64,000 nucleotides of DNA. Origin: Lepidodermella squamata (lineage: Eukaryota > Animalia > Gastrotricha). Below are positions 8,314 to 32,944 of the stretch, one piece after another (the stretch's first letter is position 1; each line of letters starts with the position of its first letter). Made by a program: the position numbers and the translations under genes. The DNA is taken from NCBI GenBank assembly GCA_047495785.1, contig JBLDXI010000054.1:1550001-1614000 (forward strand). Direction: 5' to 3'. The notes below the pieces were generated by a model. It made no database searches. It worked only from the letters and a program-made list of their open reading frames with translations, and was not told the origin of the DNA.

Positions 8314-11300
8314 TCAAAAGCCGTCCGTGTATCCCTGAGGCTGTCTCGGATCGCTCATAGCTCGAACAATAGGCCTGCTAGTATCCGGGTCCAAAATTCT
8401 CTCAACAGCTTGAATGATCGAAAAATAACTGCCGCCATTCACCGTTTGATTCTTGTGACCGTATTGATTCTTCAAAATTTCCAACAAATTCACCGGGACA
8501 TTACCGTCACGCTCGAATTGAATAGCCTCCGGGTACAACTGGTGATGAATTCGAGCCGCGTCGATGGACTCCTTCAAATCTTGGCCGAAAAACAGATTTC
8601 TCATCGCGATTGTCGCGACGCCAGATGTAATTTTGCTGCCTCCGGCGCCGCCGATAATTAACCGAACTGAGTAATTAGGGTCATCGCTGTCGGTTTTGTG
8701 GACGAATATCGACGGGCACATGGAGGAGATGGGACGTTTACCGGGTTTGATAGCATTTTCGCGGCTTTGAACCAAGCCCCAAGAGTTGGGCTTTTTCGAT
8801 GTTGAAAAATCGTCCATTTCATTGTTGAATATTATACCTGTTCGTTTTCCAATAATGCAGCTTCCGAAGCTAGAAAAAGTGAAAACAATTGAAAATTTTG
8901 AGCTAATAATAATTATGAAAAATATTAGTAAATAAATTAGTTAATAGGAAAATATTTAGGAATTTTCTGAACCATTAAAATTTGTACATTTTCAAAGAAA
9001 GCAGCAGGGCATGTCTCTTTGAAGTACAGTGTCCGAAATTAGGTCAAATAGGGATCCACCGTAATTTTTAATTTTTCCAATAATTAACGAAAATTAAAAT
9101 GAAGTCCGAAAGCGATCGAAAACTTTATTCTAAATTTTGTCCGAAATTAGGTCAAAATACCCAAGCGTTCATTTTTGATCCCGCTCCCGAATTACGTATG
9201 CAAGCAATAAAAAATTGAAAATTATGAAATAAATTATGAAAATTCCATTTTTTTCAATTTATGAACAAAAACGTGGCAAACATACTATGTATTAATTGTT
9301 GTAGTAACAGCAACCGCATTTCCAGCGCTATCAATAATCGAAATATGCGATGTCCCGGCCGTCCTCGGCTGCTGGTACACATCAGGCGAGTAATTTCGCG
9401 TCGGCTGGGTCGACGAATCATTAATCAGGCCGCGGATAAAATCCCCGAAATTCACTGACGTCAAATTCGCCACGAAATCGCTCATTTCCGGCACAAAAGA
9501 ACTATCACCCATAAAAGTTCGCTTTGCATAGGCAAATTTGAACGTTTCGATTAAACGGTGGTAAGTCAGTGGGTTTAATTCGTCTTCTTGGTCCATTTTG
9601 TAACCAGATAGGACATTAAGCATGAAGGCGAGAATCGCGCCACTGCCAGGTGGTCGCATGCTGAACATTTTAAGGCCGTCATCTCGGTTCGGAAATTCGA
9701 ATTCGACAGGTTGGCGCCATTCGACTTTGTAGTTTTTGAGATCTTCATTTGTGATTGGCGATCCGGCTTCTTGGAGATCGGCGCTTATATCGTCGGCTAA
9801 TGCACCGGTGTAGTAGTCACTTGCGCCATTTTCGGCGATTCTGCTGAAGGTTTCGGCTAATTTTGGGCAATAGACAGTCTCGCCAGTTCGATACAATTTT
9901 TTCGTCTGAGGATTCCACGTACGCGTCCTTAAGAATGGAAAATTAAACCAATAATTTATTCATTTGGAAAAATCGCATTCGGATTTTACGCGAAATTTCA
10001 TGGCTTTGAAAATTTGAAAATTCGAAATTTCAAATTTTTTCAATTTTTTAAATATAATTTATATGCTAACCCTTTAATACTTCCTGAAATCTCCCTTTCC
10101 CTTCCAGCCCTTTAAGAACTTGTCCATTTTTTTGTTATTTGTAAATTTCAAATTTTTCTGAATTTTTCATTGTCGATGAAACAACTTACAGGAATTCTTG
10201 GAAGCGTGGCTCATTTTTGTGGGAAATGAAATCAGGATCGCTGTGGATTTCATCGATTCCTATCTCGACAGATTTCGAAACTTTGAAGCCCTCTCGGCAT
10301 AGCTTTATTGAAGGTTCAAACAGGCTTTTCCAGGACAATAAGCCAAATTTTGCGTGAATTTCCCCCAGACCAGCCAGGGTACCAGGTACTGCAATCGCAT
10401 GAGGCCCTTAAAAAAAATCACAAAAATAGGGATTTTTCGCGAAAAGTGTGACTTTTCCAGAATTAGAATCCAAAAAGTGCGAAATTTGTAGGATTTTTTA
10501 AATTTTTAGAAAATTAAAATACTATCGAAAAATTACCATAAACCGAGCTGATTTTTCCATTTTCGAACATGTCCTCTGTGGCGGCTAAATACGCCACCTC
10601 CCTAGCATCCACCGTGTAGGCCTGCTGGTTTTTCTGGTCCCAAATTGTGATGAAAGACCCACCGCCGATGCCACTGAAGTGCAAATTGACGACATTATCG
10701 CAGATGATAGCGGCCACAGCTGCATCAACAGCTGCATCAACAGCTGAACCACCCCGGCCTAAAATATCGGTACCGTTTTCGGAACAAATGCCAGAATCTG
10801 CGGCTACAGCTGCGTATCGATAAATGCCCATGGGCGAAGACGAGACTGGAAAATATTAAAAAATTACAATAAATTCAAATTAAATACGTTAATTGAAAAA
10901 TAAAAAATTCCAACTTAAGAATGTATTTTTTCAAATTTTCCTACAAAATTGAATACGTTGAACAAAATTGAACATATTCATTAGTTTTGATTTTTGACCA
11001 ACCTTGATTGAAATCACTTGCAATATTCGGTGTGCGTGTTGTCATTTTAACGCATTTCCCAGGTGCGCTCCAGTTGATTGACCTGACCCCGCACGTGACC
11101 ACACTCGCGCCTATTAGCTTGTAACCCGGGTCACACACAACCCGCCTCTGAGCTCCAGTTCGCGAGTCCCCAAATAAAACATGGCCATTCTGAACCACTG
11201 GTGCCCGGCCACACGTTGGCGTGCAAAAACCGAAACGGCCTTGAGACCAATTGCCGTCGGATTCGCAATTTCGAGATCGAAGGTAGTCAGGCGTGAAATA

Positions 11301-11530
11301 GCCGTCGTAGCATGAAATATTCACCGCCGACCCGGGGCTGATTGTCGAATTTAGCGGCAATACCACACCTGTTCGGCCGTGAATATAGATGCCATTCAAT
11401 AAATCAGGCAAGGGACACGTCTGAAAATTCGAAATGAAAGCCAGGTAATAAATTAACGACTAATTTTGCTCACCCTAGCGTGGGAAAAAGCGAAAAATTG
11501 TAGAAATAAAACAAATTTTGATGTTAACAT
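8314..11530 (-). CDS. GGT: secreted Sushi(CCP)x2 - gamma-glutamyl transpeptidase (glutathione hydrolase), paralog 1
   Basis: Signal exon 11530-11474 (MLTSKFVLFLQFFAFSHAR); exon 11420-11003 has two 4-Cys/W CCP modules; then GGT motifs GGSAVDAA, GIGGG, DAREVA, AVPG, nucleophile GTSH, TTTIN, NNEMDDFS, PISSMCP, GAGGS. Splice phases checked in frame. Confidence 0.92.
9025..9160. repeat. Tc1/mariner-like end fragment with 19-bp direct repeat in a GGT intron
   Basis: tacagtgtccgaaattaggtcaaa at 9025; tgtccgaaattaggtcaaa repeated at ~9139. Confidence 0.4.
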
Positions 11531-12754
11531 TGCCCTGGAAGCAGAATGTTAACTTTGAAAAAATGAGAAGCAAGAAGTAGGTTTTTTTGTGGCTCATATA
11601 AGCGTAATTTATTGCTGATAGAATTCAGGGTATTCAAACATGGTTCTGTCATGAATGATGAAGCTGCAAACAATTCGTTATGTGTAATAGGGCAAGCTAA
11701 GAGGTGAGCCGAGAAAAACGTCACCTCTCGCTAGTTTATGACCAACTATGCAGCGTGACATAGCCCATGCCTGGGAGGCATTGTATCAGTTTGCCGGGCT
11801 CTTGAGCTTGAACTTGAGTTTCCAACACGGCAAAAGTAAGGCCTGTCCTAACTCAACAATTAATTCTTGTTTTATTTTTCCAAGTTTTTACGTTAAAAAT
11901 AATTCGGAGATTGAAATGTCTGCGGTTTTATATTATTTCATTTTTAAAACGCCCCTCTCTAGCAAATACTTTGAATATTCGCCATAAATCAAGGTTTAGT
12001 CATAAAAATAAGAGAAAAGTTGGATAATTATCAGCCCGAGCCCAACTTAATCCGAAGTCAAATTCAAAAATAATTAAATTCAAGGGAAATTCAAGGGTAA
12101 TTCCGCACTTGGAATAAAGTTTACGAAGACAAGTGGACAATATTGTACTTCAAAACCGCTCCACTTTCACCGATGTTCACCTGCGATGGGGCTTTTGTCA
12201 TTTCAACTGGACAATTCGTTAGCTTTACGATAGTTTTATTTTCATGTAACAAATATTTGCGAAGAATCTACATGTGTCAGAAAATATAAACAGAGCGGGC
12301 GATTTTTGGGTTCTGCTAACGAAAATTCGGATGAATTCGGAGAAACAAAAGCAATTGTCTTGCACTGAGCAAGAGATTGGTTAGTTTCGGGACATTTCCC
12401 GCGAATTTAATCAGTATAATACCAACGGCAGTATATTAATGCCGGCAGTTGAAAAAATATGGAGAACACCACAGGAAAACTGTACTGCTACATGGTAATG
12501 ATGATTCATCACCCAAATGCGTGTTTCAATTTTTGTCATGTTTCATGTTTTCCAGTCACGATAATTTAAAAGTGAATTTTATTGCGATAGTGAAAAATTG
12601 AATCAGATGAATAATGAAAAATTAGAAAATTCTATATGTAAAAATAAAAATTTTAATTTTTCGGAGAAAATGTGTCAATAAATTTTTGCTATTAAATATC
12701 TAATAAATTTTGGTTTTATCAAAATATTTTAATAATTTATGCATTTTTCACCTA

Positions 12755-13460
12755 GGGTCCATTTTATCTCGGCTCTCACTTTAACTTCCGAATTTTCGAT
12801 CAATCAATCGTGCATGACCCGCTGAGTAACAGCCCGCAGTACTTAGTCATGAGGGTCACGAGCCGCGGCTGAGTCTAATCAATAATAGCCAGCACAATTG
12901 CACGCGCACTGATGCTGACCTCTACACTTATAGAATATTAAGGCGCACGCTTGCGTACATTCATGTTTGCGCGCGTGTAAACAATAACCAGTTGTTCGCG
13001 ATAGCGTCGGCCGACTCGTTCTATATATAAAAATATCTAATATTCTGTATATCTGAGGAAACAAAGCGAGCCCTTGTATTACACTAAAACTCTGCGACCC
13101 ATCAACATCGCCATATTTTCTACATTTCTCATATTTCTGACCATTTTTCAAATTCACACTCCATTTTTTAACCTACATTTTGAATTTTGAGATAAATCAT
13201 TTAATTAGCTGAATGTAAAAAATATTGATCGCCACCCCAATTCATTTTAATTTTCACAAATTTCTCATCATTTCTCATCATAGCCCATGTCAGACAACCG
13301 CGATGGTCTAATTCCTTGCTTATCCTGTGTTCATTTTTAGCTAACTCGATTTTTGAAGAATTTATAACGTACTCCGTTATTGTCCGCCAATTAGGTCAGC
13401 TTTCATCGCTACATAGGACGATTTAGACCTTTTTTTTAACCTTCCGATCCTTGGCATGCG
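12755..13460 (+). repeat. upstream region duplicated with ~17340-18075 (tandem duplication unit of the transposase genes)
   Basis: Long shared blocks, e.g. atgacccgctgagtaaca...cagtacttagtcatgagggtca and gaggaaacaaagcgagcccttgtattacactaaaactctgcgacccatca. Confidence 0.85.
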
Positions 13461-15956
13461 ATGCGCAAAAGAAAAGTAGCTGATTGGATACTTCAAGAGA
13501 AAGAAGCCAGGCATGGCGGGGAGGAGTACGAAAGACGAGAGCTGAAATACCGTAGAAGGAATACCGGTTCGTTGATACGCCTTTCCAGAATATAGTTTTG
13601 TATTTATTTGCTATTTGACATTCCAGGCGAGCTGTATGTCATGAGAAAAGCCAGCCACGTCAGGGCAAGGGCCGGCGTTCGGTTGATAAACTGCTGCCCT
13701 AAGAAATGCTACGAAAAATTCAGCGATGACCAAATAGCTAGTTTCGAAAGAGCGTACCGCAGCGGCAGAAACCTGCACGAGCAACGCATTTTCATTTCCC
13801 GATTCGCGAACAAATCGCCCCGCAACGTAAGAGCCGTTATCACCTACTCCATTCCGGCGCAGTACGCCCTGCCGAAGCATCAAACAAAGGGCACGATTTT
13901 GCTGGCCGTATGCAAGCGCTTCTTCCTGAAGGCCCTCGATGTTAGCCAGAAATTCGTTAGATACACGCTCGACAACAAGGTGTCTGAAAACGGTCTCACA
14001 GTTCAGCCGGATCTTCGAAAGGCGAGTAGTAACTCGGCGAACTGCCGTCTACAACCGGCGACGATTCAATCGATTAAAGACTTCGTTCAGGTCCGACTTC
14101 ATAGCGCGTAAATATTCTGTCCTATCTATGATCATGCCTTTTGAAATTGTTGTTTCTTATAGACGTTTGAGTCATCACAGAAGGTCGCAGACAAATAGGT
14201 TGTACGTAGACTCGCAGCTGACAGTCAGCTCGCTATACCGGCAGTGGATTGATTTCATAGCGAAAAATCCACAGCCCGATGTAAACAAATGCTGCTACGA
14301 ATCATTCAGAGTGCAATTTAAGGAAAATTTCAAAAATTACAGCTTCACCCAACCGAGAAACGACAGGTTGGTTGAGATTTAAGAGTTCGAAGTTCACTCA
14401 TTTTTTTTTATTATAGATGCAAAGTCTGTGCCCGTTACTCGATGATGTCAAAAGCTGAGCGGGATCGCAACATTTCTTACTACGCCCGTCACCTTCAGGA
14501 GAAAAATTGCAGCCGAGAATTCAGAAGGGCTCGAGTCGATGCTGCGAAGGCTTCACTGCGTGACGATTACAATTCGCCTAAATCGGCCTACTTGCAGTTT
14601 GACATGATGAAGCACTTACTGGTAAGGATAAATACATAGATCTGAGATGTCGTATTAAGAAATTGCGATTCAGACCCCATGCACCAACTTTGCTTATCGC
14701 CACCAAGAAAAATTCATCACGCATTGCTTCACGGTTTTAAATTGCGGAACTGGCAATGCCGTCAATTACTGCTATGACGAAGATCAAGGTAATAGGAATA
14801 CATACTGGAAGAACTGATTAGGAATTTTATTCGTTCATCCCTCGTTTTCATAGGAGGGCAGGGTGCAACAGAAATTGGAACCTGTTTATCGCACTATTTA
14901 ACAACATACTTGGACGAAAATGTCGAACTGGTAACATTGTGCTCAGACAGCACTGTTGGTCAAGGCAAAAACAGGTAATAATTCAAAAAAATGACGCAGT
15001 TCTAATTTAGCCATTGAAAACTTCAAAACTGGCCATTCTTTTCCAGGTTCATTCCTAATGCGATCTTCCACGCTATGAGAAAAATTAATACGGAGAGAGC
15101 CCGTCGTTTCGGACCAGCTCACAAGCGACTGCGAGTGGTTGATCACATGTTTTTGGTGAATTTTTGCCATGGCTGCAGTAACCGTTAACCATTTCATTCT
15201 TTTCACAGATTCCCGGCCATACTCAGGTTAGCAACAAATCTCGTCTTTGATCTTCTTTTCAGCAAATGAAGTTTCCCCATTATGTAGATGGCTGTAGATA
15301 ACGTGCATGGGCTCATCGAGCAGTCGAGAAAACGCCGTGGCAATGTCACGGATCATCTTGAATGGAGGGACATCATCAAGAAGGCCAGGCCATCACCAAA
15401 CCAATATGACGTCGTCGAAATGACGCACGACAAATTTCTGAACCTCAAGGCTAGCCCCAACTACTTCTCAACCCTAACTGACCACAACTCTCTCAAAATC
15501 TCGGAGAATGTCCTCTATCGGTATACTTTTGACGCGGCTAGCAGGCACGAACTGTTGGCTCGAAAGAGCTATGCGGATCTCGAAGATGAGCCCCTCCCAG
15601 ACCTGGCTGCTGATGGGCAAACTAGTGACGATCTGGTCAATAATGGCGTCAAGTTTGACTTGCGTCTGATCTCCTCGAGACTTCGTCCATTTTCTTACAA
15701 CGGCGAGCCTCCACGGGCGTACCAGTCGCGGTTGAAGATCAAATTCGAGAAGAAACTCGATTTGATCCAGTGGCTTATCGATGGCGTATTTTCTCCGCAA
15801 CAACGGGATTTTATTCTCGGATTACCGTGTGACATTACATCGGCAAAGAACAAGGAGCTTTATGACAGCAAAATTGCTCTCCTGGACCAAAAATATCTTC
15901 GCAACGAATGGGACGAAGACGATGACGATTTGAAGGACGCTATTGCTCAATGTTGA
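13461..15956 (+). CDS. Sola1-type DDD transposase (or transposase-derived gene), copy 1, 675 aa, 9 exons
   Basis: Eight GT-AG introns splice to an open frame. Motifs KEARHGGEEY, CCPKKC, VCKRFFLKAL, SHHRR, PRNDRCKVC, QFDMM, YDEDQGGQGATEIGTCL, SDSTVGQGKN, FLIPGHTQMAVDNVHGLIE; three catalytic Asp present. Confidence 0.85.
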
Positions 15957-16388
15957 TTCGCAATGGTTTATTCTTAATTGTTATTCTCGTAGTTTTATCT
16001 ATGTTTGAAAAATCCTGAAATGGATAAATGATCGAAAAACCATAAAAAAATTGAAAATTTAAAACCGTTTTTCAAACAAAAGTTTCGTTTCGCTTCGTTT
16101 GTTTGAGTAACGCATTGTTCGTTCATCTTCACAACTCTTCAAACAACCCTTCAAACAACATTAAGCAATAGAAGCTTGGACGTAACTTACCCGGACAACA
16201 TTTTTAACGATGCTTTAGGTTAGCACTGCGGCCGCAGCTTGGAGCAGGCAAAGCTCGAAATATGAGGGAATCACCGATGAATCAGAAAAGTTTGAGTCGG
16301 CAGAACAATTTAGTTCCCGGGTAACCCGAACAAAAAAAAGTTTATCAAATGCGACTTTTCTCGTGTTTTTTTACGTGTTTTCTAAGTA

Positions 16389-16723
16389 GGGTTTTTTGGG
16401 ATTTAATTTGAAATTAGCGTAATATGTCGAGAATATACTAATAGCTAGAAATATCGTAATTTGATTCAAATAATTGCTTAATTAAAAATGTGTCTCTGGC
16501 GGGGGTTGAACCATCGAACATTGATGCACCAGCCCAACGCCTCACCAACTACGCCACCAGCGATCACATAAATGCTGTTGTTTTTATTGGTTTATAAATA
16601 ACTTGCACTTTGGACTTGGTTGTTTTTTCGACGCCAAGTCCATATTTCATTTTCGAGATTTCTTGACATTGCAAAAAATCTCGACATTTTTACGCTAATT
16701 TCAAATTAAATCCAAAAGAACCC
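16389..16723. repeat. inverted-repeat element enclosing a tRNA-like sequence
   Basis: ggatttaatttgaaattagcgtaatatgtcgaga (16399-16432) pairs with tctcgacatttttacgctaatttcaaattaaatcc (16679-16713). Confidence 0.7.
16492..16563 (-). pseudogene. degenerate tRNA-like sequence (nominal anticodon GGT, Thr)
   Basis: 72 nt; TCGCTGG/CCAGAGA acceptor stem (1 mismatch), A-box TGGCGTAGTTGG, B-box GGTTCAACCC; D, anticodon and T stems mismatched. Confidence 0.6.
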
Positions 16724-18075
16724 CAAAACCGCAATTAAAATCACAGGGTCGATATCAGTCGAAAAAACGCCACTCTATGAATGGCAGAAAAAGTCGTATT
16801 TTTTTCGTGATATCACTGTGCAATTTTTTCATAACGATCAACCTCGCAAAAAACTGGCACGCGCCGTCTACTTTTTTGGGCATTTCTCGCACTAAGACAG
16901 AAATACTCCAATAACAGCAATAAAACCTCCAAATGACTGAATGAATCATCGTTGGCGATGAAAAAAATAGCCACAAAACCCGTAAAAAATAATGCGAACC
17001 AAAAAAACTCTTAAACAGTGTGCACTTTTTTGTTCGGGAAATGAGATCTGCGTCGAATTCGTAATCGTGATGCCCTGTTACAATTTCAGAATAATTCACC
17101 ATAGGCAGCAGACAACCGAGCCCCGAGAAGCATTTGCCGCTATCCATTTGAATACCCAAACGGCTTATATCGGATCTCCCGGACTAGTTTTTGCCTGCTA
17201 CCTAGAACATTTAAGGTGATGATGAATAAGGCGCCATGCTCCATATGCAAAACAGCAAACAGCACGCGCAATGCTGCTGACATTCACATATAAAATATTA
17301 AGACGCATGTTCGAATGTTATTTTATGAATTGATGACCTCGGCTCGCCTTTATTTCGGGTCTCACGCTGTAACTTCGAAATTTTCGAAAAATCAATCGTG
17401 AATGACCCGCTGAGTAACATCCCGCAGTCCGCAGTACTTAGTCATGAGGGTCATGAGCCACGGCTGAATATAACCAATAATAGCCAGCACAATCGCACGC
17501 GCACTGATGCTGACCTCTACACACATGAAATATTAAGGCGCACGCTCGCGTACATTCATGTTTGCGCGCGTGTAAACAATAACAAGTTGTTCACGATAGC
17601 GTCGGCCGACTCATTCTATATATAAAACCATCTAATATTCTGTATATGCGAGGAAACAAAGCGAGCCCTTGTATTACACTAAAACTCTGCGACCCATCAT
17701 CACCGCAACATTTGCTATATTTTTCCTATTTCTGACTATTTAACATTTAAAATTCGAGCTCCATTTTTAACCTTAAATTTATAATTTTTAGATAAATCAG
17801 TCGATTAGTTTTCGAACGATGTAAAAAATATTGATAATCATCCCCAATGCATTTCATTTTTCACTGATTGCATATTATTTTCATTATAACCCATGTCACA
17901 CAATGGCTATTGTTGGCCTATCATTTGAGGCGAACTCGATTTTTTAAGTCGTTCGACAACAATCTTAAAACAATATTTTGTACTCCATTATTCTCTGTCA
18001 ATTCACCCTACTTTCATCTCCAAACTCCACATAGGCCGATACACACCTTTCTCAACTTTCTCCCCTTTACATACG

Positions 18076-20605
18076 ATGCGTAAAAGAAAAGTAGCTGATT
18101 GGATACTTCGCGAGAAAGCAGCAAGGCATGGCGGGGAGGAGTACGAAAGACGGGAGCTGAAATACCGTAGAAAGACAACCGGTTCGTTTAAATTTTCTAT
18201 GCTTTTCCCAAGAAAAAGCTATCAATTTAATGAGACACAGCATTAAAATGGTTTGATATTCCAGGTGAACTGTATGTCATGAGAAAAGCCAGCCACGTCA
18301 GGGCAAGGGCCGGCGTCCGACTTATCAACTGCTGCCCCAAGAAGTGCTACGAAAAATTCAGCGACGACCAGATTGCTAATTTTGGAAATGCTTACAGAAG
18401 CAGCAAAAGCTTGCATGAGCAACGGATTTTCATTTCCCGTTTCGTTAGCAAATCTCCCCGTAACATCCGAGCCGTTATTACCTACACAATTCCCTCACAA
18501 TACGCTCTGCCTAAATTTCAAACCAAAGGGACAATTGCCATCGCTGTATGCAAGCGTTTCTTCCTCAAAGCTCTTGATGTCAGCAAAGATTTTGTAAAAT
18601 ACACCCTCACCCACAAGTTAGCTGATAATGGCCTGGAAATTCTACCGGATCTTCGGAAGGCGAGTAGCTCATCGGCGACCTGCCGACTGCAACCTGCAAC
18701 AATTCAATCGATCAAAGATTTCGTTCAGGTCCGACTTCACAGCGCGTAAGCATTCTGGCGCATAAATCGTGGTTATAAGATTTCAGTTTCTAATAGACGT
18801 TTGAGCCATCACAGAAGGTCGCAGACAAATAGGTTGTACGTGGACTCAAAGTTGACAGTCAGCGCGCTATACCGGCAATGGATTGATTTCATCGCGAAAA
18901 ATCCACAGCCCGATGTAAACAAATGCTGCTACGAATCATTCAGAGTGCAATTTAAGGAAAATTTCAAAAATTACAGCTTCACCCAACCGAGAAACGACAG
19001 GTTGGTTGAGATTTAAGAGTTCGAAGTTCACTCATTTTTTTTTATTATAGATGCAAAGTCTGTGCCCGTTACTCGATGATGTCAAAAGCTGAGCGGGATC
19101 GCAACATTTCTTACTACGCCCGTCACCTTCAGGAGAAAAATTGCAGCCGAGAATTCAGAAGGGCTCGAGTCGATGCTGCGAAGGCTTCACTGCGTGACGA
19201 TTACAATTCGCCTAAATCGGCCTACTTGCAGTTTGACATGATGAAGCACTTACTGGTAAGGATAAATACATAGATCTGAGATGTCGTATTAAGAAATTGC
19301 GATTCAGACCCCATGCACCAACTTTGCTTATCGCCACCAAGAAAAATTCATAACGCATTGCTTCACGGTTTTAAATTGCGGAACTGGCAAAGCCGTCAAT
19401 TACTGCTATGACGAAGATCAAGGTAGAAACAATGGAACAACTAGTTATGATTGCCATTCTATCGTGTTTCTTTCCCATAGGAGGGCAAGGCGCGACAGAG
19501 ATCGGCACCTGTTTATTGCACTATTTAACAACATATCTGGACGATGATGTCGAACTGGTTACATTGTGCTCGGACAGCACTGTTGGTCAGGGCAAAAACA
19601 GGTAATAATTAAGAAAAATAGTTAACCATCGAAACGTGAAGCGTGAAGAGAAAATACGTTTCTGACTTGGGTTTTAATGACCGTTTCTACAGATTCATTC
19701 CGAATGCGATATTTCACGCTATGAGAAAGATCAACGCGGAGAGGGCTCGTCGCTTGGGACCTGCCCACAAGCGTCTGCGAGTAGTTGATCACATGTTTTT
19801 GGTGAGTTTTTGCCATACCTGCTGTAATCGCTAACCATTTCTATCTTTGATCATTTCAAACAGATTCCCGGCCATACTCAGGTTAGTCAGAAAGCTCATC
19901 TTAGTTATTGACTGAATCATTCATTCCTTTGCATAGATGGCTGTAGATAACGTGCATGGGCTTATCGAGCAGTCGAGGAAACGCTGTGGCAATGTCACTG
20001 ATCATCTTGAATGGAGAGACATCATCAAGAAGGCCAGGCCATCGCCAAACCAATATGACGTCGTCGAAATGACCCACGACAAATTTCTGAACCTCAAGGC
20101 CAGCCCCAACTACTTCTCAACCCTAACTGACCACAACTCTCTCAAAATCTCGGAGAATGTCCTCTATCGGTATACTTTTGACGCGGCTGGCAGGCACGAA
20201 CTGTTGGCTCGGAAGGGCTATGCGGATCTCCAGGACGAGCCCCTCTCAGACCTACCGGCTGATGGGCAAACAAGTGAAGATCTGGTCAATAATGGCGTCA
20301 AGTTTGATCTGCGTCTGGTCTCCTCGAGACTTCGTCCATTTTCTTACAACGGCGAGCCTTCACGAGCGTACCAGTCGCGGTTGAAGATCAAGTTCGAGAA
20401 GAAACTCGATTTGATCCAATGGCTCATCGATGGCGTATTTTCTCCGCAGCAACGGGATTTCATTCTTGGATTACCGTGTGACATATCTTCGCCGACGAGC
20501 AAGGAGCTTTATGATAGCAAAATCGCTCTTCTGGACCAAAAATATCTTCGCAACGAATGGGATGAAGATGATGACGATTTGATGGACGCTTGCGCCAAAA
20601 GTTGA
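18076..20605 (+). CDS. Sola1-type DDD transposase (or transposase-derived gene), copy 2
   Basis: Same 9-exon structure and motifs as copy 1, open frame, DDD intact; ATG at 18076 (MRKRKVADWILREKAARHGG). Confidence 0.85.
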
Positions 20606-20990
20606 TTCAATGTTACTTTTGCCCAATTATTGTGCTCAACCTTGTTTTGTCTAAAAATGGTTCTTGAAATAACATGAAAACACAATTGAACACAATGAAC
20701 ACAATTGAAAAACTTCCAGCGAACCTTTAAACAACGCTTTTTGAAAGTGAAGCAAAAAATATATTTTGCAGAGAAAGGGGCTGATTTATTGGCCTACCTA
20801 CTGATAACATGAGTGAACACAGCAATATATGCAAATATTCCAGCTGAAAGCTGAACACTGATCAACTAAATTTGCCTTTTGCAACAAAATCGCTAAGATC
20901 CATTTTTTCTCTTGATTTTTCATAATGCAGTACGAATGTCATTGAAATGAGCCCTGTGTATATCTCCAGAGGTTCAAAAACTTGATTCAG

Positions 20991-23811
20991 CTAAAACCCG
21001 TCCGTGTAGCCCTGCGGCTGACGTGGGTCGCTCATAGCGTGTATGACCGCGCGTTTCATATCCGTGTCCCACATTCGCTCGATGGCTTGGACCGCCGAAA
21101 AGTACGCCGCTTGGTCAGCTTCCTGTCGCGTGTGGCCGAATTCACGCTTCAGTACATCAAGCAGATTCGTCGGAGCAGAACCGTCGCGCTCGTACTGCAG
21201 TGCCTCGGGGTATAGCTGGTGATGCAAGCGAGTCGCATCAACCGATTGCTTGATATCTTGGCCGAATACCAAAATTCGAACGGCTACGTCAACGGTGCTA
21301 GTCGCGGTTTTTGTGCCACCAGCAGCACCTACAACAAGACGTACTGAGAACGTGGTTTCGTTCGCCATTTTTTGGACGAAGATTGTCGGGCACATTGAGG
21401 AGACAGGGCGTTTTCCGGGTTTGATAGCATTGGCTCGGCTTTGTAACAGACCGGCCGCGTTGGCCTTCTTGCTCGTTGAGAATGCGTCCATTTCATTGTT
21501 GAAGTAAATGCCAGTTCGGCGACCAAATACTGCACTGCCAAAGCTGGAAGGCAAGACATAGTTTAGTACAAATATCAAGTTCCAGATTATCTCCTGGAAA
21601 TCCTTGAAATTTCTCAAACAGGAGAAAGCAACTTCACTTCATTTTCAAAGAGGAATTTTCTTTTGACTGGGACCTTACATGCTTGATAGTGTTCATCATA
21701 TTTTCTTAATGCTGGTAGCAATAGTAAGATGAAAGCTGAAAGCTGATCTTACTTTGAATTAATTGTCGACGATACAGAAATCGCATTTCCAGCCCCATCG
21801 ATGATCGACAAATGCGATGTAGTGCCACCCCTCGGCTGCTGGAACATCGTTGGCTCGTAACTTTTCGTCAAAGGCCGAGCCGCCGTGTCATTAATCATCG
21901 TCCGATACGTGCGTCCATAAGCCGCTGCCGTTAAATTAGCCACCCACGCCGTCATTTCCGGCTGGAACGAACTGTCACCCATCATACTCATCTTCGCATG
22001 AGCGTATTTGAATGTTTCAATCAAACGGTGATGAGTTAGAGGGTTCAGCCCATCTTCAGGCCTTAGGTTGTAATTTGAGAGAATATTCAGCATAAACGCG
22101 ACCAGAGCACCACTAGCAGGCGGGCGGGGTGTGAACAGTTTCAGGCCATCAGTTCGGCCGGGCATTGCGAATTCGATAGGTTGCCGCCATTGAACGCGAT
22201 AACGCTTCAGATCGTCGATTGTTATCGGGGATTTGATGTCTTTCAGGTCTGATACGATGTCGTTTGCGAATGAGCCGTTGTAGAAGGCCGCAGATCCGTT
22301 GTCGGCGATTCGAGTTAGCGTGGTCGCTAGACTGGGACACGTCATTATATCGCCAGCTCGGTAGAGACGACCAGTTCTCGCATTTGTGATAAAGGTCCTG
22401 TTTATTTTTAAATAAAATATTGGTACAATATGTTTCTGTAACATGTTGTTGACATTTTTTGAAATTTCAGAAATGACAATTGGGAATTCTTAGGAATAAA
22501 AATTCCGATATTTCCTGATAGATATTTCCTAAACATTAAAATACTGGATTTACTTGTGATCGCGAAATGGTGTTTGATCTTTTGTCGCGTTGAGTACTGT
22601 ATTTCGGTTGATTTCGTCGATGGCGATCTCGCCAGCTTTTGTCAGTTTGAAACCAGTTCGACACAGCTGGATTGCCGGTTCGAAGAGGCTTTTCCATGGC
22701 AAAAGACCCCATTTCGCGTGCACTTCGCCAAGTCCAGCTATAAAGCCAGGCACCGCAATCGCATAAGGTCCTATAGTGAATAGGAAATAATTTAAGATAA
22801 CAACATTTTTGGAATCTTTGAATAACTCACCAAATACCGAGCTGAGTGTTCCATTCTCGAAAAGATCTTCATTCGCGGCCAACGGAGCAACCGAACCGGC
22901 ATCGACGGTCCAGCCACGTTGATTTTTCTGATCCCAAATGGTCATGTGCAATCCACCGCCTATGCCGCCCATGTGAAAGTTGACGACGTTATCGCAGGCC
23001 AGGGTGGCTACGGCAGCATCGATTGCCGATCCGCCGCGAACTAGCACGGAATTACCGATTTCGGAGCATTCGCCAGCTTCAGAGGCCACTGCAGCGTAGC
23101 GGTAGACGCCCATAGAGGATTTTGAAGCTGAAATTGAAATTATAAAACATTTTAAAAGTAAAATTTGATTTGAATTGAACTGAAATTTGAAAAATTTAAG
23201 AATAAGAAATTCTTTGATCAAAAGACAGAAGTTTTTTTCCAAGAATAGGAAGTTCATTTTCTCACCTTGACCGAATTCACTTAGCATGTACTCGTTACCA
23301 GGCAACGGTCTGGGTAACCTCGTGCAATTACCCGGGCGGCTCCAAGTCAGCGTTTTGGCATCACAAACAATCGAGCTAGCTCCAGCCAGTCTGAAATTTG
23401 GAATGCAAACGACCCGCCTTTCAGCACCAGCTCGCGATTCGCCGTCCAAGACCTGACCGGACGTGACCGTGGGAGGGCGACCGCAGGTTCCAGTACACGA
23501 CCCAAAGGCTCCAGTCCTCCACTCGCCCGTATTTCCATCACAAGTTCGCGTTTTCCCGGTCGGGGCGATGTAAAACCCGTCTTGGCAGACAATATTCACG
23601 ACCAGGCCAGCTGCGGCTTGGCTGAGAGGCGACAGCACGGTACTGGCATTGCCTGATACATATACCCCATTCGTCAAATTCGGAAGCGTGCAGGTCTGAT
23701 TGGAAAATTAAGATAAAAATCGACAAAAATGGCGTAAATCGATACCTTAGCTGCTACTAGAGCAGCAGACGCGGCCACTAGCGTGAAGTTGAGCGCTAAT
23801 TTAACAAACAT
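20991..23811 (-). CDS. GGT: secreted Sushi(CCP)x2 - GGT-like protein, paralog 2 (substrate-binding residues altered)
   Basis: Signal exon from 23811 (MFVKLALNFTLVAASAALVAAK); two CCP modules; GGT motifs with TTSH nucleophile, but DAGSVA instead of DAREVA and NNEMDAFS instead of NNEMDDFS. Confidence 0.9.
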
Positions 23812-25189
23812 AAATAGATCAGCTCAACTGAAGCGAGTCTGCAGGCGGTGGCTAGGGCGTTGATTTATGCGTCTCAAAAAACGCGCATTTAGCACGTGCT
23901 TACGCACTTACCGGTTTTTTGTAACGAAAAAAATTAGTGCACCGGCCAGGGTGTCCGTTTTTACTATTAGGTGTAATGTCTGGGACCAGGCTTGCGTGCT
24001 GCGGTAATTATTGCACTATTGCGACATGAAATCAGGCGACGCGAAATTCAGCAAGCAGCCTTCATCGCAGATTTTGTCTGGTGGAATGGTGTCAAGTCCA
24101 GGTGTCACGCACGTCACGCCAAAAATAGTCCTTTCTCATGATCACGTGGTCAGTTTTATGATAATTAATAGAATTTCGACCTAGTTGATATGTACCAACC
24201 CCCTATCAGCATGACGTTCAATGCTAAGGTCGAAATTTATCATTTTAAGAATTATTCAAGATGTTTAAAAAACGTCAAGGTCGATTGAATTTTCTGTAGT
24301 TTGTGGCTGTCCGAAATAAGCCGGGTGATTTCGTTTTTTCTGGCTGAATTTCAGGACAAATGAGCAATTCAAATTTGTTCTAAACATGATCATCTAACTG
24401 AAGTCGATGCGCTCTTTCTTTTGCGCTTTTTTCCGGCTACAAAATACTGCAGAATAAAAAAGTTGGCAATTTTTTACCTCGGCGCACACCTGCGAAGAAG
24501 TGCAACCATTATTCGTAAAAAAATCCGTTTCTCATATTTCAGATGTCATTTGAAAGGCGGGACTCCGGACTATCTTCTACATTTTGAACGGTATTTTTAT
24601 CCACCAGGGTTGAGGAGAAACGCGCGCTCAAAGTCAAAAGTGTCCGAAATTATTCCGTCCGAAAAAGGACCGCGTTACAGTATGTGCAAATTTTAAAAAT
24701 CAAAACATTTTCAGGTTTTTTGGGGAAAGGTGTGTCTCTACAAGTGAAAATGAACCCATACATATTTTACGCTTTACGCTTCGATAATATCAATAAATGG
24801 TCTTGCCCGGGAGCCTCCTCCAGTCAAAGGAAAACAGCGATTGAGAAGATGCGTTATACGACTTTATTGATGCATGTGTGACTTTGAACGTGATCTGCAC
24901 ATTAACATTATCCAAGACTTTCACAGGTTTTGTTTTCAAAATCTAAGCCGACCTAATAAGGTCTTTTGGCATACCTAATAAGCACGACGGCCACAGGCTA
25001 ACTTAATGAGAACAATTCTTTAGAAGACTATGACTAATTAGGTTGCAAAAAAGTGAAAACAAAGGAACTGATAAAATTTTAAGCTGAGATTTAGCCGAAA
25101 AATAGCGAATAGTGAATATGACTCGGGAATTTGCGGTTTTGATTATTGCCCTCTACCTTGAGGCAAAGAAAACTATTAAGCTGTCGATG

Positions 25190-27606
25190 CTAGAAGCCAT
25201 CAGGATAGCCTTGACGACGGCGATCACTGACAGCTCTTATAACAAAGCGAGCCTGATTCGGGTCAAAAACACGCTCGATCGCGGTGATTGTGCTGAAAAA
25301 GCTGGCTGCATTCTCCAGCTGATCTACGTGGCCGAAATCCCGTTTCAGAACGGCAAGCAACTCTCTAGGCGCAGCATCTTCCTTCTCGTACTGAAGAGTT
25401 TCAGGAAACAGCTGATGATGCAGCCGGGAAGCATCAACAGCTTGCTTTATATCTTCCCTAAGAAACAAATTTCGAAACGCAACGTAGGCGACTCCAGTCG
25501 TAATCTTCGAACCACCGCCCCCTCCGATAACCAGCCTTGGGTAGTAGATAGATTTATCACCCTCACCGTGCTTCTGAAGAATGACAGTCGGGCACATTGA
25601 AGAGACAGGCCGTTTACCAGGTTTGATCACATTAGCTCGGCTGGGTGTTAGGCCCCAATTATTAGGCAATTTTGTGGTCGAAAAGTCGTCCATTTCATTA
25701 TTGAAAACAATACCTGTCCTTTTACCAACAATACCACTGCCAAAGCTGGTTGAAAAGGTTCAGCACAAGTTTTAGGGGTAATCTCGCCAAACTTACTAGG
25801 TATTGATGGTTGAAGTCAAAGCTACAGCATTCCCAGCTCCATCAATGATAGACATGTGCGAGGTCCCAGCTGTTCTAGGCTGCTGATACATCTCCATTGT
25901 CGCGTATTTGTTAGTGGGCTGGGTCGATGTGTCATTGATTAGGCTTCGAATGAATTCACTGTAATCATGCGATGTCAAATTATTGACTAAATCCTCCATT
26001 TCAGAATGGAAGGAACCATCCCCCATCAGGGTACGCTTTGCATAGGCGAATTTGAAAGATTCAATGAGGCGGTGGTAGGCCAGTGGGTTTACAACATCTT
26101 TCGCAGTAATATTGTACCCGGCCATGATATTCAAGATAAAAGCTAGAATAACCCCACTCCCAGGCGGTCTCATGCTGTATAGCTTGAACTCTTCCTTATC
26201 CGAGTTCGAAAACGAAAATGCGACTGGTTCACGCCATTCTGGTTTGTAGCGGCGAAGATCCTCAGCGGTAATCGGCGAGCCAGCATCTTTCAAATCAGCC
26301 ACTATGTCTTCAGCGAGGGATCCGTTGTAGAAATCGGATGGACCATTCAAAGCGATCCGTTCCATCGTCTTGGCCAAAGTAGGGTACTTCATCAAATCTC
26401 CTGTTCTATAAGACGCCCCAGTTGCTGGGTTTGTGATCAGCTTCCTAAAGATTATGAAAGCTGGAAGCTGAATTGTTTAACAAAACTGTTTATACCTGAA
26501 TTCGGTGAAAATCGATTGGTCTTGGACCTTGGAATTTGTTGAATTTATGAACTCATCGATAGCAACTTCGACTGATCTTGAAACTTTGAAGCCATCGATG
26601 CACAGTCGCTGGGCGACCTGAATCAGCTGAGACCACGGCAGTCGACCGAACTTCGCATGGACTTCCCCCAATCCGGCTACGAACCCTGGAACACCTATAG
26701 CGTAGCCACCTTTACACAAATTTACGCAGGTAAAGAATTCAATAATTATTCCAAGTTTACTATAGAGCGAAGATATTGTTTTGTCTTCGAACATGTCCTC
26801 AGTCGCTGACAAGTAGGCCACCTCCCTGGAGTCTATCGTATACGCTTTCTGGGTTTTCTGGTCCCAAATTGTCATGAAAAATCCACCTCCAACCCCTGCA
26901 AAGTGAATATTCACGACATTGTCGCAAAACGCTGTCGCCACGGCTGCGTCTACCACCGAACCACCCAATGCCAGGATTTCAGTCCCAACCTCGTTGCAGA
27001 TTCCTGCGACTGAATTCACAGCAGCAAACCGGTAGACTCCCATGGGCGATGGAGATACTAGGATAAATTCTTACAGTGAGAAGGTAAATGAGAAGCTTAA
27101 AACTCACCATATGTGAACTCGTTAGCTAAATTAGAGCTTGCTGCCGATTTTGGAATGACTTTATGACAAGTTGTTGGGTTAGACCAGTTGAGGCTTATGA
27201 CCCCACATAGAATAGTGCTACTACCGTTAATGAGCCTGTACCCATCATCACAGATAATTCTCCGCTGAGCTCCAATTCTCGAATCGCCGTTCAGAATTTT
27301 CCCATGCTCAACTTTTGGCGCGGGGCCACACGTTGGATTACAAGTTCCGAAAGGATCGGGTAGCCATAGACCATCCGATGAGCATGCTCGAGTTCTGACA
27401 CCCTCGCCTATCGCGAAACCTTCGAAACAAGATATTGATACATTAGTTCCTTCCTGGACTTCAGTTCTTTGTGGCAAGACAGTCCTCAGCTCCGTTTTAA
27501 GGTAGACTCCATTACTTAGGAATGGCAAGAAACATTTCGCGGATGAGCTTTCGAGGCATATCGAAACAATGAAGAGGATCACAATAGTTGTACACTGCTG
27601 GTTCAT
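25190..27606 (-). CDS. GGT: secreted Sushi(CCP)x2 - gamma-glutamyl transpeptidase, paralog 3
   Basis: MNQQCTTIVILFIVSICLESSSA signal, two CCP modules, DSREVA, GTSH, TSTIN, NNEMDDFS, PVSSMCP, GGGGS all intact. An alternative in-frame ATG lies 7 codons upstream. Confidence 0.92.
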
Positions 27607-27857: not shown

Positions 27858-29833
27858 TCATCCATTGAATAAGTATTCTATAAGAGTGTGAAATAGACCG
27901 AAAAAAACGCATGCAGAGCTTGCAAGCTTCCTTTCCGCCACGATATTTGTTAGCAGATAATCAGGAGGACCCCGTTTCCATTCCCAGATCTGGCGACGTT
28001 TTTCCTCGCTACAGGGACTGGTCATCAGCTCAAGACCAACCGCTTCAATGCACTCATTTGTGAAATTGCTTTTAAGCATTCCATTCTGGAAAAAATGAAG
28101 GATAAAGCTCAATTTATGACACCTTAAAAGTAAATACGGGTAAAAGGTGGAATATTTGATTTTCAGCATCTAAATTGCACAACTCTGTCTGAACTTTATG
28201 ATCTCCCTTGGTGACAAGGCAGTTTAGATCTTGGCGAACAAATCCAGATTTCGACATGTACCAGACTTGCTTCTCTGAAGAAAACTCGTTAAATTAGTAA
28301 TTGAGCGAAACATAAAATACCTTAACCATTTGAGTGCTGGCAGCGAGTCAGCTTCGCAGAATTGTCAATGCAAAGGTTAGTTCGAGTGCTGCGAATTACA
28401 CCAGAAGCATGAACATTCAAAGGGTCTAGTGTTTCCGGGGCCACATGCTCCAGAAACCAACTGAATGGTTTGCAATTCAGCTTCTCACGCAGCTTTTTCC
28501 GTTCAGTTACATTCGGGCTCGTCGAGACCGGAAGTGCTAGATATTTGTAGTATTGATGTTTGTACTCATCAAACCAAACCTCAGCGATTCGAATGTTGTT
28601 TCGCAGAAACGGGAATACAATCACGGCATACGGTTCAACGAATGGTAATAGATTTGGAGTGGGATTTTGATCAAACATATGACCAACCCGACTGCATGGG
28701 ATGATCTCCTGGCTACCACCGCAAAGCCATACTTTCATGGCGAGTTCGACATTTTCGGATCCCCAAACCTCCATTCCATCATCGAACATTCCTAGTTTTA
28801 TGAAATAGTCTCTTCTCATGACGTAGTGTCCAGTGATAGCAATAGGGCACTCTATAGGATCTGCAGCGGTCTTACGTTTCTCTCGACGCCATTTTGAGGT
28901 CTGAAGAAAAAAATTGATTGATGTTTTTGTTGGCAATCATATACTTGCATAAATCCATTGGAGCGTGAAATCCCAGACGAACTGAGTGGTGAATCCCGTT
29001 TCTCCATTGAAATGGAAAGCCAGAGTGTCGTGGCCAATCGAATCATGAACCGGCAGTACAACAATGGAATGCTTTTCATAGATCCTATATAAAAGAGGCT
29101 CTAGCCATCCATGAGTCACCTCCACATGGGCATCCAAGTAAGCGATTACTTCTCCAGTTGCTTGGCGAGCCGCGAAATTTCTGGCTTTTATAATTCCAAG
29201 CCGTTCTTTGGTTCGGAACATTTTTACTTTGGGAAATCGTTGCATATACCTCTCAAGCGGTTCTTTGAGATTCTCGTCGTCTGACATATCATCTACCAAT
29301 ATGATTTCTTTGAGAAGGGATGGTGGAGATCTATTGATAACCGAATGAATTGTCCTCAGCAGCATAGACCAAGCTTCGTTGTAAAAACAAATCAAAACTG
29401 ACGCTTGAGGCAGTTTTTCGATAGGGTACTTAATGTTCCGACATTCGAGAGGCCGTATATCAGGGAGAGATCGGTTTAGAGACATGAGATCGGAAGCAAA
29501 GGCGTTGTAGTGATGGGTGAAAATCTTTTCCGTGTATCTTTTCATATCCTGCCGGCCGAGCCGCAATTTATCGATCAATACAGGATCGCCATTCTTGCCG
29601 TATTTATCTGGAATAACAGGGTAACCATCTGCTCCTGGTTCGTTAAGCAGAGCTTTGAATGTTCCAGCTTTTGAGTAGAACTCGGCTATATAACCGGCGA
29701 TTTGAAAGATTTGATACAGCCATAGCGTGATGATTGTAAAATAAATCAGTGTAATCAATTTTCTAGGTGTTAACCGCTTGATTGTGGTTGCCAGCAGGCG
29801 ACTGTAATAAGACAGTGCGTGGAACAAAGACAT
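27858..29833 (-). CDS. GALNT: polypeptide N-acetylgalactosaminyltransferase-like (GT27), paralog A
   Basis: N-terminal [25 protein letters not shown] (DxH), WGSENVE, PCSRVGH, ricin-type lectin with QxW, C-terminal hydrophobic extension. 4 exons; the first intron is GC-AG. Confidence 0.9.
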
Positions 29834-30970
29834 TGTTATTAATTTTCATTACATGTGTTAATCATGTGTTAATGGGTAAACACACTGCCGACATCTCTCG
29901 CGTGGTTTTGTTCAACTGTTTACACTAGTTACATTGCTAACCGAAATTACATGTACGGTCCAGAGCAGCAACTTTGACAAAGCCAATAGGTAACTTCAAC
30001 AAAGGAATTCTAGCGGAAGACCTTGACTTTTTATTGACATCAGCCATAAGAGAATTACTTTCTTTGGGGGCTGTGATCTTACATTTATAAATTTGCCATA
30101 AAGAAACTTTATTACCAGTCTTATCATATCTAGAAAACCCAAGTGCGTACTACACAAAAGTTTTTTTTTTTTCAAAAGTACGCTTCCTTTGCTGTGGCAC
30201 TAGTTCACAGTTCACAAAGATACATTAAACGAGGATCCTGCTTCTCCAACTGACTAAAATGAACTCACGAGTATTGCCAGGTCGTTTTTCATGTATAATT
30301 CCCCATCTTCGTATTCCTATAATTAGTTACAATTTAATTACAATTACATTATCTATTATTCAATTTTTCAACTTCGTGCTACCATTTACAATTAAAAAAT
30401 AATGTTAGGGAGCACTCTTTTTGCCAAGAAATTCTGCCCATGCCAAGCTATATTGCATTCACACAAGATCACACTACTAAATCAGATATTTTAGGAGCCC
30501 GCTGTACCTAGGGCGGAACAATCAGGCCGTTCTCGCCATTGATTATTCTTTCTAAATGGTTTGATGCCTAATAATGGCCTTTGTAAAGCCGGAACGTCGC
30601 TGGAGTCTCTTAACGCCATGATTCTTTAGTAAATATTTCAGCAAACAGTCCCTCATCGCCCGATTGACATCACAGCCTGACAGTTGAAATAAAAATAATA
30701 GTTAAATGAGACTGGCTACATCTAAATTCGACACATTTTGGTTGATTGCAGGAGTTCGATATTCGACCCTACGTAGATCATAAGGGAATATGAAGTCCTA
30801 CGCGCGACCGATGCCACGTTATCCGCTACTCGCCATTTCCACCAACAAAATTTCATCAGTCCACGTTGAAAGTAGACACTAACGAAAAAGATTGGCAACA
30901 ATTTGTTCGCGGATGAGCATTTCGGACAATCGAGCTGAGGATCATAAGTGCAACAGATTTTTATTTGTCA

Positions 30971-32944
30971 TTATAAACTATTGAGTATTACGAGCACGAG
31001 AAAAATACCGGACACTGCACATGCGGCGCCTGAGAGTGTCAGTTGTTCTGCGATATTTTTAAGCAAATAATCAGGGGGACCTCTTTTCCATTCCCAGATC
31101 TGGCGACGCTTTGCCGCACTACAGGGACTCGTCACCAGTTCAAGGCCGGCAGCTTCAATGCATTCATTAGTGAAATTGCTTTTAATCATCCCATTCTGGA
31201 TAAAAACGAAGAATAAAGCTCAATTTATGACGTCTCAAAAGCTATTACGGGTAAAAGGTGGAATATTTGATTTTCAGCATCTAAATTGCACAACTCTGGG
31301 TAAACTTTGCGATCTCCCCTAGTGACAAGGCAGCGAAGATCTTGCCGAACAAATCCAAATTTTGACAAGTACCAGATTTGTTTTTCTGACAAGAGAATCA
31401 TTAAAAACGTATTTTCTCAGTAAAATGATTATACCATTTGAATGCTGGCATCGGATCAGCCTTACAGTATTGTCAATGCACAGGTTAGTGCCACTGCTCC
31501 GTATCACCCCTGAGGCATACACGTTTAGAGGATCCAATGTTTCTGGGGCCACATGCTCCAGAAACCAACTGAATGGTTTGCAATTCAGCTTCTCACGCAA
31601 CAGCTTCCTATCAGTTACATTCGGGCTCGTCGAGACCGGAAGTGCCAGATATTTGTAGTAATGATGTTTGTACTCATCGAACCACACCTCTGCGATTCTG
31701 ATGTTGTTTCGTATAAATGGGAACACAATCATGCGGTAGGTTTCACGAATGGCAGCAGATTTGGAGTGGGATTTTGATCGAACATATGGCCAACCCGGCT
31801 GCATGGAATGATTTCCTGGCTACCACCACAAAGCCATACTTTAATAGCGAGCTCGACATTCTCCGATCCCCAAACCTCCATCCCATCATCAAACATTCCT
31901 AATTTCATGAAATAGTCTCTTCTCATGACGTAGTGTCCAGTGATAGCAATAGGGCACTCTATAGGATCTGCAGCGGTCTTACGTTTCTCTCGACGCCATT
32001 TTGAGGTCTAAAGAAAATATTTGAAAAAGTTGTATTCTCAGCAATCATGTACTTACATAAATCCATTGGAGCATGAAATCCCAGACAAATTGAGTGGTGA
32101 ATTTGGTTTCTCCATGGAAATCGTAAGCCAGAGTATTGTGGGCAATCTCATCATGAACCGGCAGTACAACAATCCATTGCTTTTCGTAGATCCTATGAAG
32201 CAGAGGTTCCAACCATCCAGGGGTAACCTCCACATGGGCATCTAAATAAGCTATTACTTCTCCAGTTGCTTGGCGAGCCGCGAAGTTTCTGGCTTTTATA
32301 ATTCCAAGCCGCTCTTTGGTTCGGAATATTTTGACCTTCCGGAATCGCTTGAGATACTCCTCGAGTGGGGCTTTCAAATTCTCGTCGTCTGACATATCGT
32401 CTACCAGGATTATTTCTTTGAGTAGGGATGGTGGAGATCTGTTGATAACCGAATGAATTGTCCTCAGCAGCATAGACCAAGCTTCGTTGTAGAAACAAAT
32501 TAAAACTGAAGCTTGGGGTAATTTGTCGATAGGGTATACTATGTTGCGACATTCCGGCGGCCTGATGTCGGGAAGAGATCGGTTCAGAGACATTAGATCC
32601 GAAGCAAATGCGTTATAGTGATGGGTGAAGATCTTCTCAGTATATCTTTTCATATCCTGCCGGCCGAGCCGCATTTTATCGATCACTACAGGATCGCCAT
32701 TCTTTCCATATTCATCTGGAATTACTGGAGATCCTGGTTCGTTTAGCAACGGTCTGAATGTTCCAGCTTTTGAGTAGAAATCGGCTGCATAGCCGGCGAT
32801 TTGGATGAGAAGATACAGCCATAGCGTAATGATTGTAAAACAAATCAGAGTTACGAATTTTCTTGGTGTAAACCGCTTGATTGTTGTGGCCAGCAGACGA
32901 CTGTAATATGACAGTGCGTGAAACAAAGACGTTGTTATTTTCAT
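30971..32944 (-). pseudogene. GALNT: GALNT-like paralog B with a 1-nt frameshift (pseudogene or assembly error)
   Basis: Closely similar to A/C, but ttcgtgaaacctaccgcatgatt is 1 nt shorter than C's ttcgttgaaccgtatgccatgatt at ~31735-31748, giving PFVKPTA*. Downstream exons remain intact. Confidence 0.8.

Follow-up and report, generated by a model that had tools for sequence, protein, structure and literature searches.

Three tandem gastrotrich genes join a Sushi pair to a complete gamma-glutamyltransferase domain and are predicted to encode secreted fusion enzymes

What sets the position of an extracellular enzyme when protein-binding modules stand where its membrane anchor would be encoded? 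Gamma-glutamyltransferase (GGT), a textbook ectoenzyme, is normally held in place by a lipid anchor, and accessory globular domains seem to be rare in animal GGTs. The question is raised by a locus of the gastrotrich Lepidodermella squamata (contig JBLDXI010000054.1, positions 1,550,001 to 1,614,000), a 64-kb stretch referred to here as the window, with about 42% G+C, AT-rich short GT-AG introns and tandem gene families. Three intact genes, which we call G1, G2 and G3, lie on the minus strand between 8.3 and 27.6 kb of the window, and each joins a signal-like N-terminus and two complement-control protein (CCP, or Sushi) modules to a complete GGT domain (Table 1). The reading that we favor, with a probability of roughly 0.6, is that one exon-shuffling fusion and an old triplication gave rise to a secreted, self-processing GGT positioned by its CCP pair, of which G2 is a re-specialized or non-catalytic copy.

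Exon junctions in G1–G3 were taken directly from the DNA, and exon lengths and phases were then checked. All 14 introns of the three genes are GT-AG, no exon contains a stop, and each coding sequence is a multiple of three, with 2199 nucleotides (nt) encoding 732 amino acids (aa) in G1, 2208 nt encoding 735 aa in G2 and 2214 nt encoding 737 aa in G3. Four introns are common to G1, G2 and G3 at the same positions and in the same phases; the intron after the signal exon occurs in G1 and G2, where it matches, and is absent from G3. Introns of 50–53 nt make up 7 of the 14 and are the commonest size at the locus, including all four introns of G3 (50–51 nt), while the longest, up to 416 nt, are in G1. 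In every case the CCP exon is joined to the first GGT exon across a GT-AG intron of phase 1 at the same position, and in G2 this intron has no in-frame stop, so that a single open reading frame (ORF) of 385 codons (22553-23707) takes in both the CCP pair and the N-terminus of the GGT whether the intron is spliced or not. For G2, another acceptor lying about 50 nt further upstream was rejected because it breaks the frame. The original prediction had the CCP exon splicing in frame into the GGT exon in all three genes, with junction coordinates that prove right to within one base, and had proposed a signal-like N-terminus, two CCP modules, a linker and a full GGT with its Thr three times over; Pfam assignments and gene models bear out both points and confirm the fusion architecture at the level of gene models. 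We infer that the CCP and GGT exons are carried on one mRNA per gene. No fourth Sushi or GGT copy was found in the window.

All sequence searches were run exon by exon. Pfam assigns Sushi (PF00084) to the exon that immediately precedes the GGT exons in all three genes (E 5e-10 to 1e-13), with scores of 45.6, 40.2 and 52.0 bits in G1, G2 and G3 against a gathering cut-off of 20.7, and marks two Sushi stretches in G1, two in G3 and one in G2. The CCP hallmark, four Cys and one Trp in each module of about 60 residues, is present in both modules of every protein, and these 8 Cys and 2 Trp align across G1–G3. An AlphaFold model of the G1 CCP exon, made for G1 only from a three-sequence alignment, is all-beta with a mean pLDDT of 87, whereas its last ten residues, which belong to the linker, reach 48. 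Foldseek comparison of this model with the PDB gives as top matches the CCP pairs of beta2-glycoprotein I, CD46 SCR1-2 and C4BP CCP1-2, followed at lower rank by those of C1r, C1s, MASP-1 and MASP-3, and all matches listed are CCP-containing chains with a probability of 1.00. Between the last CCP Cys and the start of the GGT core lies a linker of 21–24 residues, roughly as long as the juxtamembrane stalk of anchored relatives. The CCP pair may tether the enzyme to a ligand.

The GGT exons match G_glu_transpept (PF01019) at E values of 1e-20 to 1e-58 per exon and jointly cover profile positions 2-512 in each gene; the exception is G1 exon 4, which, taken as an ATG-started ORF fragment, scores E 4e-5 and falls below the cut-off alone. 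For the GGT exons searched (G1 exons 3, 5 and 6 and G2 exon 3), the closest solved structure is human GGT1. We compared 12 positions of the human enzyme (Arg107, Glu108, Thr381, Thr399, Asn401, Glu420, Asp422, Asp423, Ser451, Ser452, Gly473 and Gly474), with the residue register taken from human GGT1 alignments (light chain 4gg2_B residue 1 = Thr381; heavy chain index 80 = Arg107). G1 and G3 carry the human residue at 12 of 12 positions, and G2 has Gly, Ser and Ala at Arg107, Glu108 and Asp423. Equivalents of the nucleophile Thr, of Thr399/Asn401 and Ser451/Ser452, and of the oxyanion-hole pair Gly473/474 are present in all three proteins. In GGT1 structures, the gamma-glutamyl moiety is held at its alpha-amino and alpha-carboxyl groups by Asp423 and Arg107. 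Among the homologs fetched, the Arg107 position is Arg in 233 of 255, the Glu108 position Glu in 228 of 255 and the Asp423 position Asp in 176 of 193. Mutation at Arg107/Glu108 and at Ser451/452 lowers the activity of human GGT1 (cited in PMC4035087, on wasp venom).

From these residues, G1 and G3 look like catalytically competent, glutathione-type GGTs, and autoprocessing at the conserved Thr is predicted for all three proteins. G2, which has no equivalents of Arg107, Glu108 and Asp423, is probably not a standard glutathione hydrolase: it probably still processes itself but would not bind glutathione in the standard way, and it may have either an altered specificity or a mainly binding, non-catalytic role. 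Of the earlier description of three full GGTs acting as glutathione or gamma-glutamyl hydrolases, the complete domain and the nucleophile Thr stand for every copy and the hydrolase assignment agrees with the canonical residues of G1 and G3, but the same assignment probably does not suit G2, in which three of the pocket residues are missing. Two peculiarities of G1 may be recorded here. Its exon 3 (10700-10760) holds a 4-residue internal duplication in a conserved N-terminal helix of the GGT core that is absent in G2, G3 and human GGT1. In addition, the motif F-P-V-S can be read in frame across the intron end and the first exon codons (10843-10855), and two of the metagenome relatives described below (P0004 and P0007) have this motif just before the GGT core; in G1 it may be a relic of an ancestral exon or may have arisen by chance, since it coincides with a pyrimidine-rich acceptor.

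Among the matches listed, the closest GGTs are encoded by tandem genes on ENA metagenome contigs, with 45–56% identity per exon. These contigs (L001–L004, 18–30 kb) are eukaryote-like with short introns and carry at least five tandem GGT genes with transmembrane (TM) anchors, adjoining a TPR_WDR11-like gene; the intron positions of their GGT genes differ from those of G1–G3. Proteins P0004, P0007, P0008, P0002 and P0152 have an N-terminal TM helix in the equivalent place and no Sushi module, the anchor of the metagenome relatives shares its coding exon with the GGT core, and tblastn with the G1–G3 Sushi exons gave no match on the contigs that carry these closest relatives. The named relatives, from Lingula, Patella and Haliotis (42–47% identity), are likewise anchored. 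That the nearest relatives are TM-anchored supports replacement of the anchor in G1–G3, and the replacement proposed from the DNA alone is upheld by the TM helix, without Sushi, at the same place in the closest relatives.

Protein identity between the G1–G3 paralogs is 38–47% in the CCP exon and 49–69% in the GGT exons. Synonymous differences are saturated (proportion of synonymous differences, pS, 0.65–0.90), and the ratio of nonsynonymous to synonymous proportions (pN/pS) is 0.23–0.53 in every exon, including the CCP exon. Judged by this divergence the copies are old, and open frames with retained Cys and Trp residues in spite of it point to selection on the CCP exon as coding sequence. In a neighbor-joining tree of the largest exon with 40 homologs, G1–G3 form a clade in 100 of 100 bootstraps, with G2 the most diverged; together with the common introns, this clade indicates one fusion event before the duplications. 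A pseudogene or assembly artifact was considered and rejected on the grounds of three independent intact copies and purifying selection.

The Sushi–Sushi–GGT combination was not found elsewhere in the databases or literature searched, in keeping with the original remark that no description of it was known. A full HMMER scan of 1.84 billion representatives with the G2 ORF spanning both domains gave a best match of 168 bits and no Sushi+GGT protein among the 150 best matches listed, and a word-indexed search with the same ORF, likewise bounded by a length window, gave matches that all carry PF01019 only. A word search restricted to the Sushi part of this ORF returned nothing at E 0.001 in a length window of 212-674 aa, which would miss fusions of 730 aa. 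Scanning metagenomes with an alignment of the three Sushi exons recovered only one locus (L005), encoding a multi-Sushi protein without GGT; twelve animal GGT homologs with long N-terminal extensions contained no genuine extra Pfam domain; and the literature on Sushi or CCP together with GGT yielded incidental co-mentions only. The protein collections searched do not contain the source lineage, and the locus suggests an animal lineage that public protein collections cover poorly.

In the history and mechanism that we favor, exon shuffling would have brought a two-CCP exon with a secretory leader into a GGT1-type gene in place of the region encoding the TM anchor, and the fused gene would have triplicated long ago into G1, G2 and G3. 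The short N-terminal signal would take each product into the endoplasmic reticulum (ER), where both CCP modules would fold with disulfides and the GGT proenzyme would most likely cut itself at the conserved Thr, giving a soluble heterodimer whose large subunit bears the CCP pair on a flexible 21–24-residue linker. Through the CCP pair, as a binding module, the enzyme would be held on a protein or surface ligand, and extracellular gamma-glutamyl hydrolysis or transfer would then occur at the site of the ligand and not at a lipid anchor. G2 would have kept its nucleophile and oxyanion hole while losing its grip on the gamma-glutamyl moiety at the alpha-carboxylate and the alpha-amino group. A more far-reaching version, in which the CCP pair is a recognition exosite for a macromolecular or cell-surface target, with G1 and G3 tethered and G2 re-specialized or acting as a purely binding partner, is in our estimation a speculative and rather improbable extension; if true, it would amount to a hitherto unknown extracellular GGT system guided by CCP modules, serving immunity, surface redox control or a secretion directed at another organism, in an animal lineage that has hardly been sampled.

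Several observations count against a soluble, CCP-positioned enzyme, and they bear on different alternatives. G1–G3 could be type II membrane proteins, in which the N-terminal segment is an uncleaved signal anchor and the CCP pair, as a stalk or co-receptor module, separates the GGT ectodomain from the membrane rather than standing in for the anchor. Anchors are present in all close relatives, and the N-terminal segments of G2 and G3, with 17 and 13–14 uncharged residues, have mean Kyte-Doolittle values of 1.86–1.88 over 19 residues, above the TM threshold of 1.6, and could be uncleaved anchors. The G3 ORF is moreover open upstream to in-frame ATGs at 27627 and 27774 (56 codons), and translation from the more distant of them would leave the hydrophobic segment inside the protein, behind a cytosolic tail of about 60 residues. 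Exon 1 of G1 and of G2, found by a heuristic scan for ATG-started, donor-ended mini-exons combined with hydrophobicity, depends on that hydrophobicity and donor-site heuristic, and G1 has a second signal-like candidate at ATG 11597. Yet an in-frame stop 7 codons 5' of the ATG in G1 and 5 codons 5' of it in G2 leaves no cytosolic tail in either protein, and the hydrophobic core of G1 has only about 10 residues (maximum 19-residue Kyte-Doolittle value 0.93). The hydrophobic stretch of G1–G3 starts at residues 4–6, is 10–17 residues long and closes with a small-x-small motif directly before Cys1 of the first CCP module in all three proteins, unlike the run in anchored homologs, which begins at about residue 17 and is about 19 residues long. 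The cytosolic tail and the TM helix of about 20 residues directly before the core that characterize type II GGT1 are absent from G1–G3, where about 140 residues of CCP pair and linker stand between the hydrophobic stretch and the GGT core. No other TM-like segment or C-terminal anchor was found in these proteins by hydrophobicity, and each contains 8–11 N-x-S/T sequons. The early start, the length and the small-x-small motif before Cys1 fit a cleaved signal better than an anchor; we predict signal cleavage in G1–G3 and consider membrane-bound products unlikely.

It could also be that the CCP and GGT exons belong to separate genes or transcripts, one for a small secreted two-CCP protein and the other for a leaderless GGT begun from a Met in the first GGT exon. 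Such a Met does lie 5 residues into that exon in all three genes, and read-through of the donor continues for 22 further codons in G1 and 2 in G3 before a stop. However, a 50-nt intron is ordinary at this locus, indeed the modal size, and is too short for one gene to finish and another to begin; the gaps of 50–157 nt leave no room for a terminator and a promoter. Canonical, phase-compatible donors and acceptors occupy the same position in three synonymously saturated copies, the gap in G2 is an open frame joining both parts, and a leaderless GGT would not reach the ER, yet the GGT part has 4–7 sequons and conserved Cys. Separate transcripts for CCP and GGT are on this evidence very unlikely. 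The CCP pair is itself without a close relative, the best listed HMMER Sushi matches being multi-CCP proteins of about 34% identity and the word search giving none. Its nearest folds, complement regulators and beta2-glycoprotein I, would suit a role in venom, saliva or anti-microbial secretion, in which G1–G3 form an expanding secretory gene family of GGT-like proteins acting on another organism and the CCP pair binds a foreign cell or a host complement or clotting target. The genes are tandem, old and divergent, one copy (G2) has an altered active site, as does one of three wasp venom gamma-GTs (PMC4035087), and GGT is a recognized tandemly expanded family of centipede venom (bioRxiv 10.64898/2026.10.26.761191). 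Against this, described venom GGTs have a signal peptide only and no accessory domain, and the pN/pS values of 0.2–0.5 lack the diversifying pattern common in venom genes, a test that saturation limits; we rate this role as doubtful, and a secreted, CCP-positioned enzyme remains the reading that we prefer.

Table 1. Positions in the window of the three fusion genes and their parts, and the sources of the nearest relatives
Feature	Coordinates	Strand	Details
Gene G1	8314..11530	-	6 exons: 11530-11474, 11420-11003, 10845-10537, 10406-10190, 9927-9286, 8869-8314
Gene G2	20991..23811	-	6 exons: 23811-23746, 23695-23266, 23127-22831, 22770-22554, 22397-21753, 21543-20991
Gene G3	25190..27606	-	5 exons: 27606-27108, 27057-26761, 26709-26496, 26444-25797, 25745-25190
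G1 exon 1, 19-residue signal-like peptide	11474..11530	-	followed by a 53-nt intron
G2 exon 1, 22-residue signal-like peptide	23746..23811	-	followed by a 50-nt intron
G3 signal-like segment, 23 residues	27538..27606	-	within the CCP exon
G1 CCP module 1 (Cys1-Cys4)	11223..11417	-	
G1 CCP module 2 (Cys1-Cys4)	11052..11213	-	
G2 CCP module 1	23495..23692	-	no Pfam call alone; 4 Cys and Trp align with G1 and G3
G2 CCP module 2	23324..23485	-	
G3 CCP module 1	27340..27534	-	
G3 CCP module 2	27166..27330	-	
G1 CCP-to-GGT intron	10846..11002	-	157 nt, GT-AG, phase 1; junction 11003/10845
G2 CCP-to-GGT intron	23128..23265	-	138 nt, GT-AG, phase 1; junction 23266/23127
G3 CCP-to-GGT intron	27058..27107	-	50 nt, GT-AG, phase 1; junction 27108/27057
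G1 GGT part	8314..10845	-	4 exons; PF01019 profile positions 2-511; 12/12 active-site positions canonical
G2 GGT part	20991..23127	-	4 exons; equivalents of nucleophile Thr, Thr399, Asn401, Ser451/452 and Gly473/474 kept
G3 GGT part	25190..27057	-	4 exons; 12/12 active-site positions canonical
G1 codon of nucleophile/autoprocessing Thr (human GGT1 Thr381 equivalent)	9351..9353	-	
G2 codon of nucleophile Thr	21818..21820	-	
G3 codon of nucleophile Thr	25862..25864	-	
G2 codons at human Arg107-Glu108	22892..22897	-	Gly-Ser
G2 codon at human Asp423	21483..21485	-	Ala
Nearest relatives, proteins P0004, P0007, P0008, P0011, P0012	contigs L001-L004		

The remainder of the window holds further repeated sequence. 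Between G1 and G2, a unit of about 3.3 kb occurs twice in direct orientation on the plus strand (12759 to about 16000 and 17347 to about 20650); the copies are about 4.6 kb apart and 76–96% identical by segment, and each has several plus-strand ORFs of up to 222 aa in different frames. The unit has no Pfam or PDB sequence match, no long inverted repeat (at least 40 nt) was found within 11531-20990, and the repeat may represent either a mobile element or a segmental duplication. Polypeptide GalNAc-transferase-like genes with Glycos_transf_2 and Glyco_transf_7C exons form a tandem array on both strands at 28322-47323, in at least seven copies (5 minus, 2 plus), and a 474-aa copy is 50–56% identical to mollusk, nematode and arthropod enzymes alike. 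On the minus strand at 55045-62600 lie three tandem paralogous ORFs of 230–275 aa, in each of which an unrecognized N-terminal region of about 170 residues precedes a weak EGF-like match that falls below Pfam cut-offs.

Retention of the CCP pair on GGT through an ancient triplication suggests selection for positioning or target choice via protein binding. G1–G3 thus offer a natural case for asking how the siting of extracellular glutathione breakdown matters, and G2 a natural example of a GGT scaffold in which the nucleophile is kept and the canonical substrate grip lost, in parallel with a wasp venom paralog.

G1–G3 share with animal GGT1-type enzymes (MEROPS T03, PF01019; human structures 4gg2, 4gdx and 4z9o) the full-length catalytic domain and key residues, but they have a signal-like peptide and two CCP modules instead of a TM anchor and cytosolic tail, and G2 has lost three pocket residues. 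The metagenome GGT genes are likewise arranged in tandem, but their products are anchored and no Sushi exon accompanies them. In venom GGTs, namely centipede scoloptoxin SSD14 and the gamma-GTs of Aphidius ervi, a signal peptide has also taken the place of the anchor, as is predicted here, and the genes are also multi-copy; these enzymes have no described accessory domain, and arthropod 'SSD14-like' matches are about 37% identical to G1–G3 over the matched stretches. One Aphidius ervi venom gamma-GT paralog is mutated at positions known to reduce human GGT1 activity, which parallels G2 (PMC4035087). In C1r, C1s and the MASPs, a CCP pair likewise stands immediately N-terminal to a secreted, self-activating hydrolase, but the catalytic fold is unrelated (chymotrypsin as opposed to N-terminal nucleophile hydrolase), and the likeness is an analogy of design that implies no sequence kinship. 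Horseshoe crab factor C, which also bears Sushi modules, has a comparable domain grammar.

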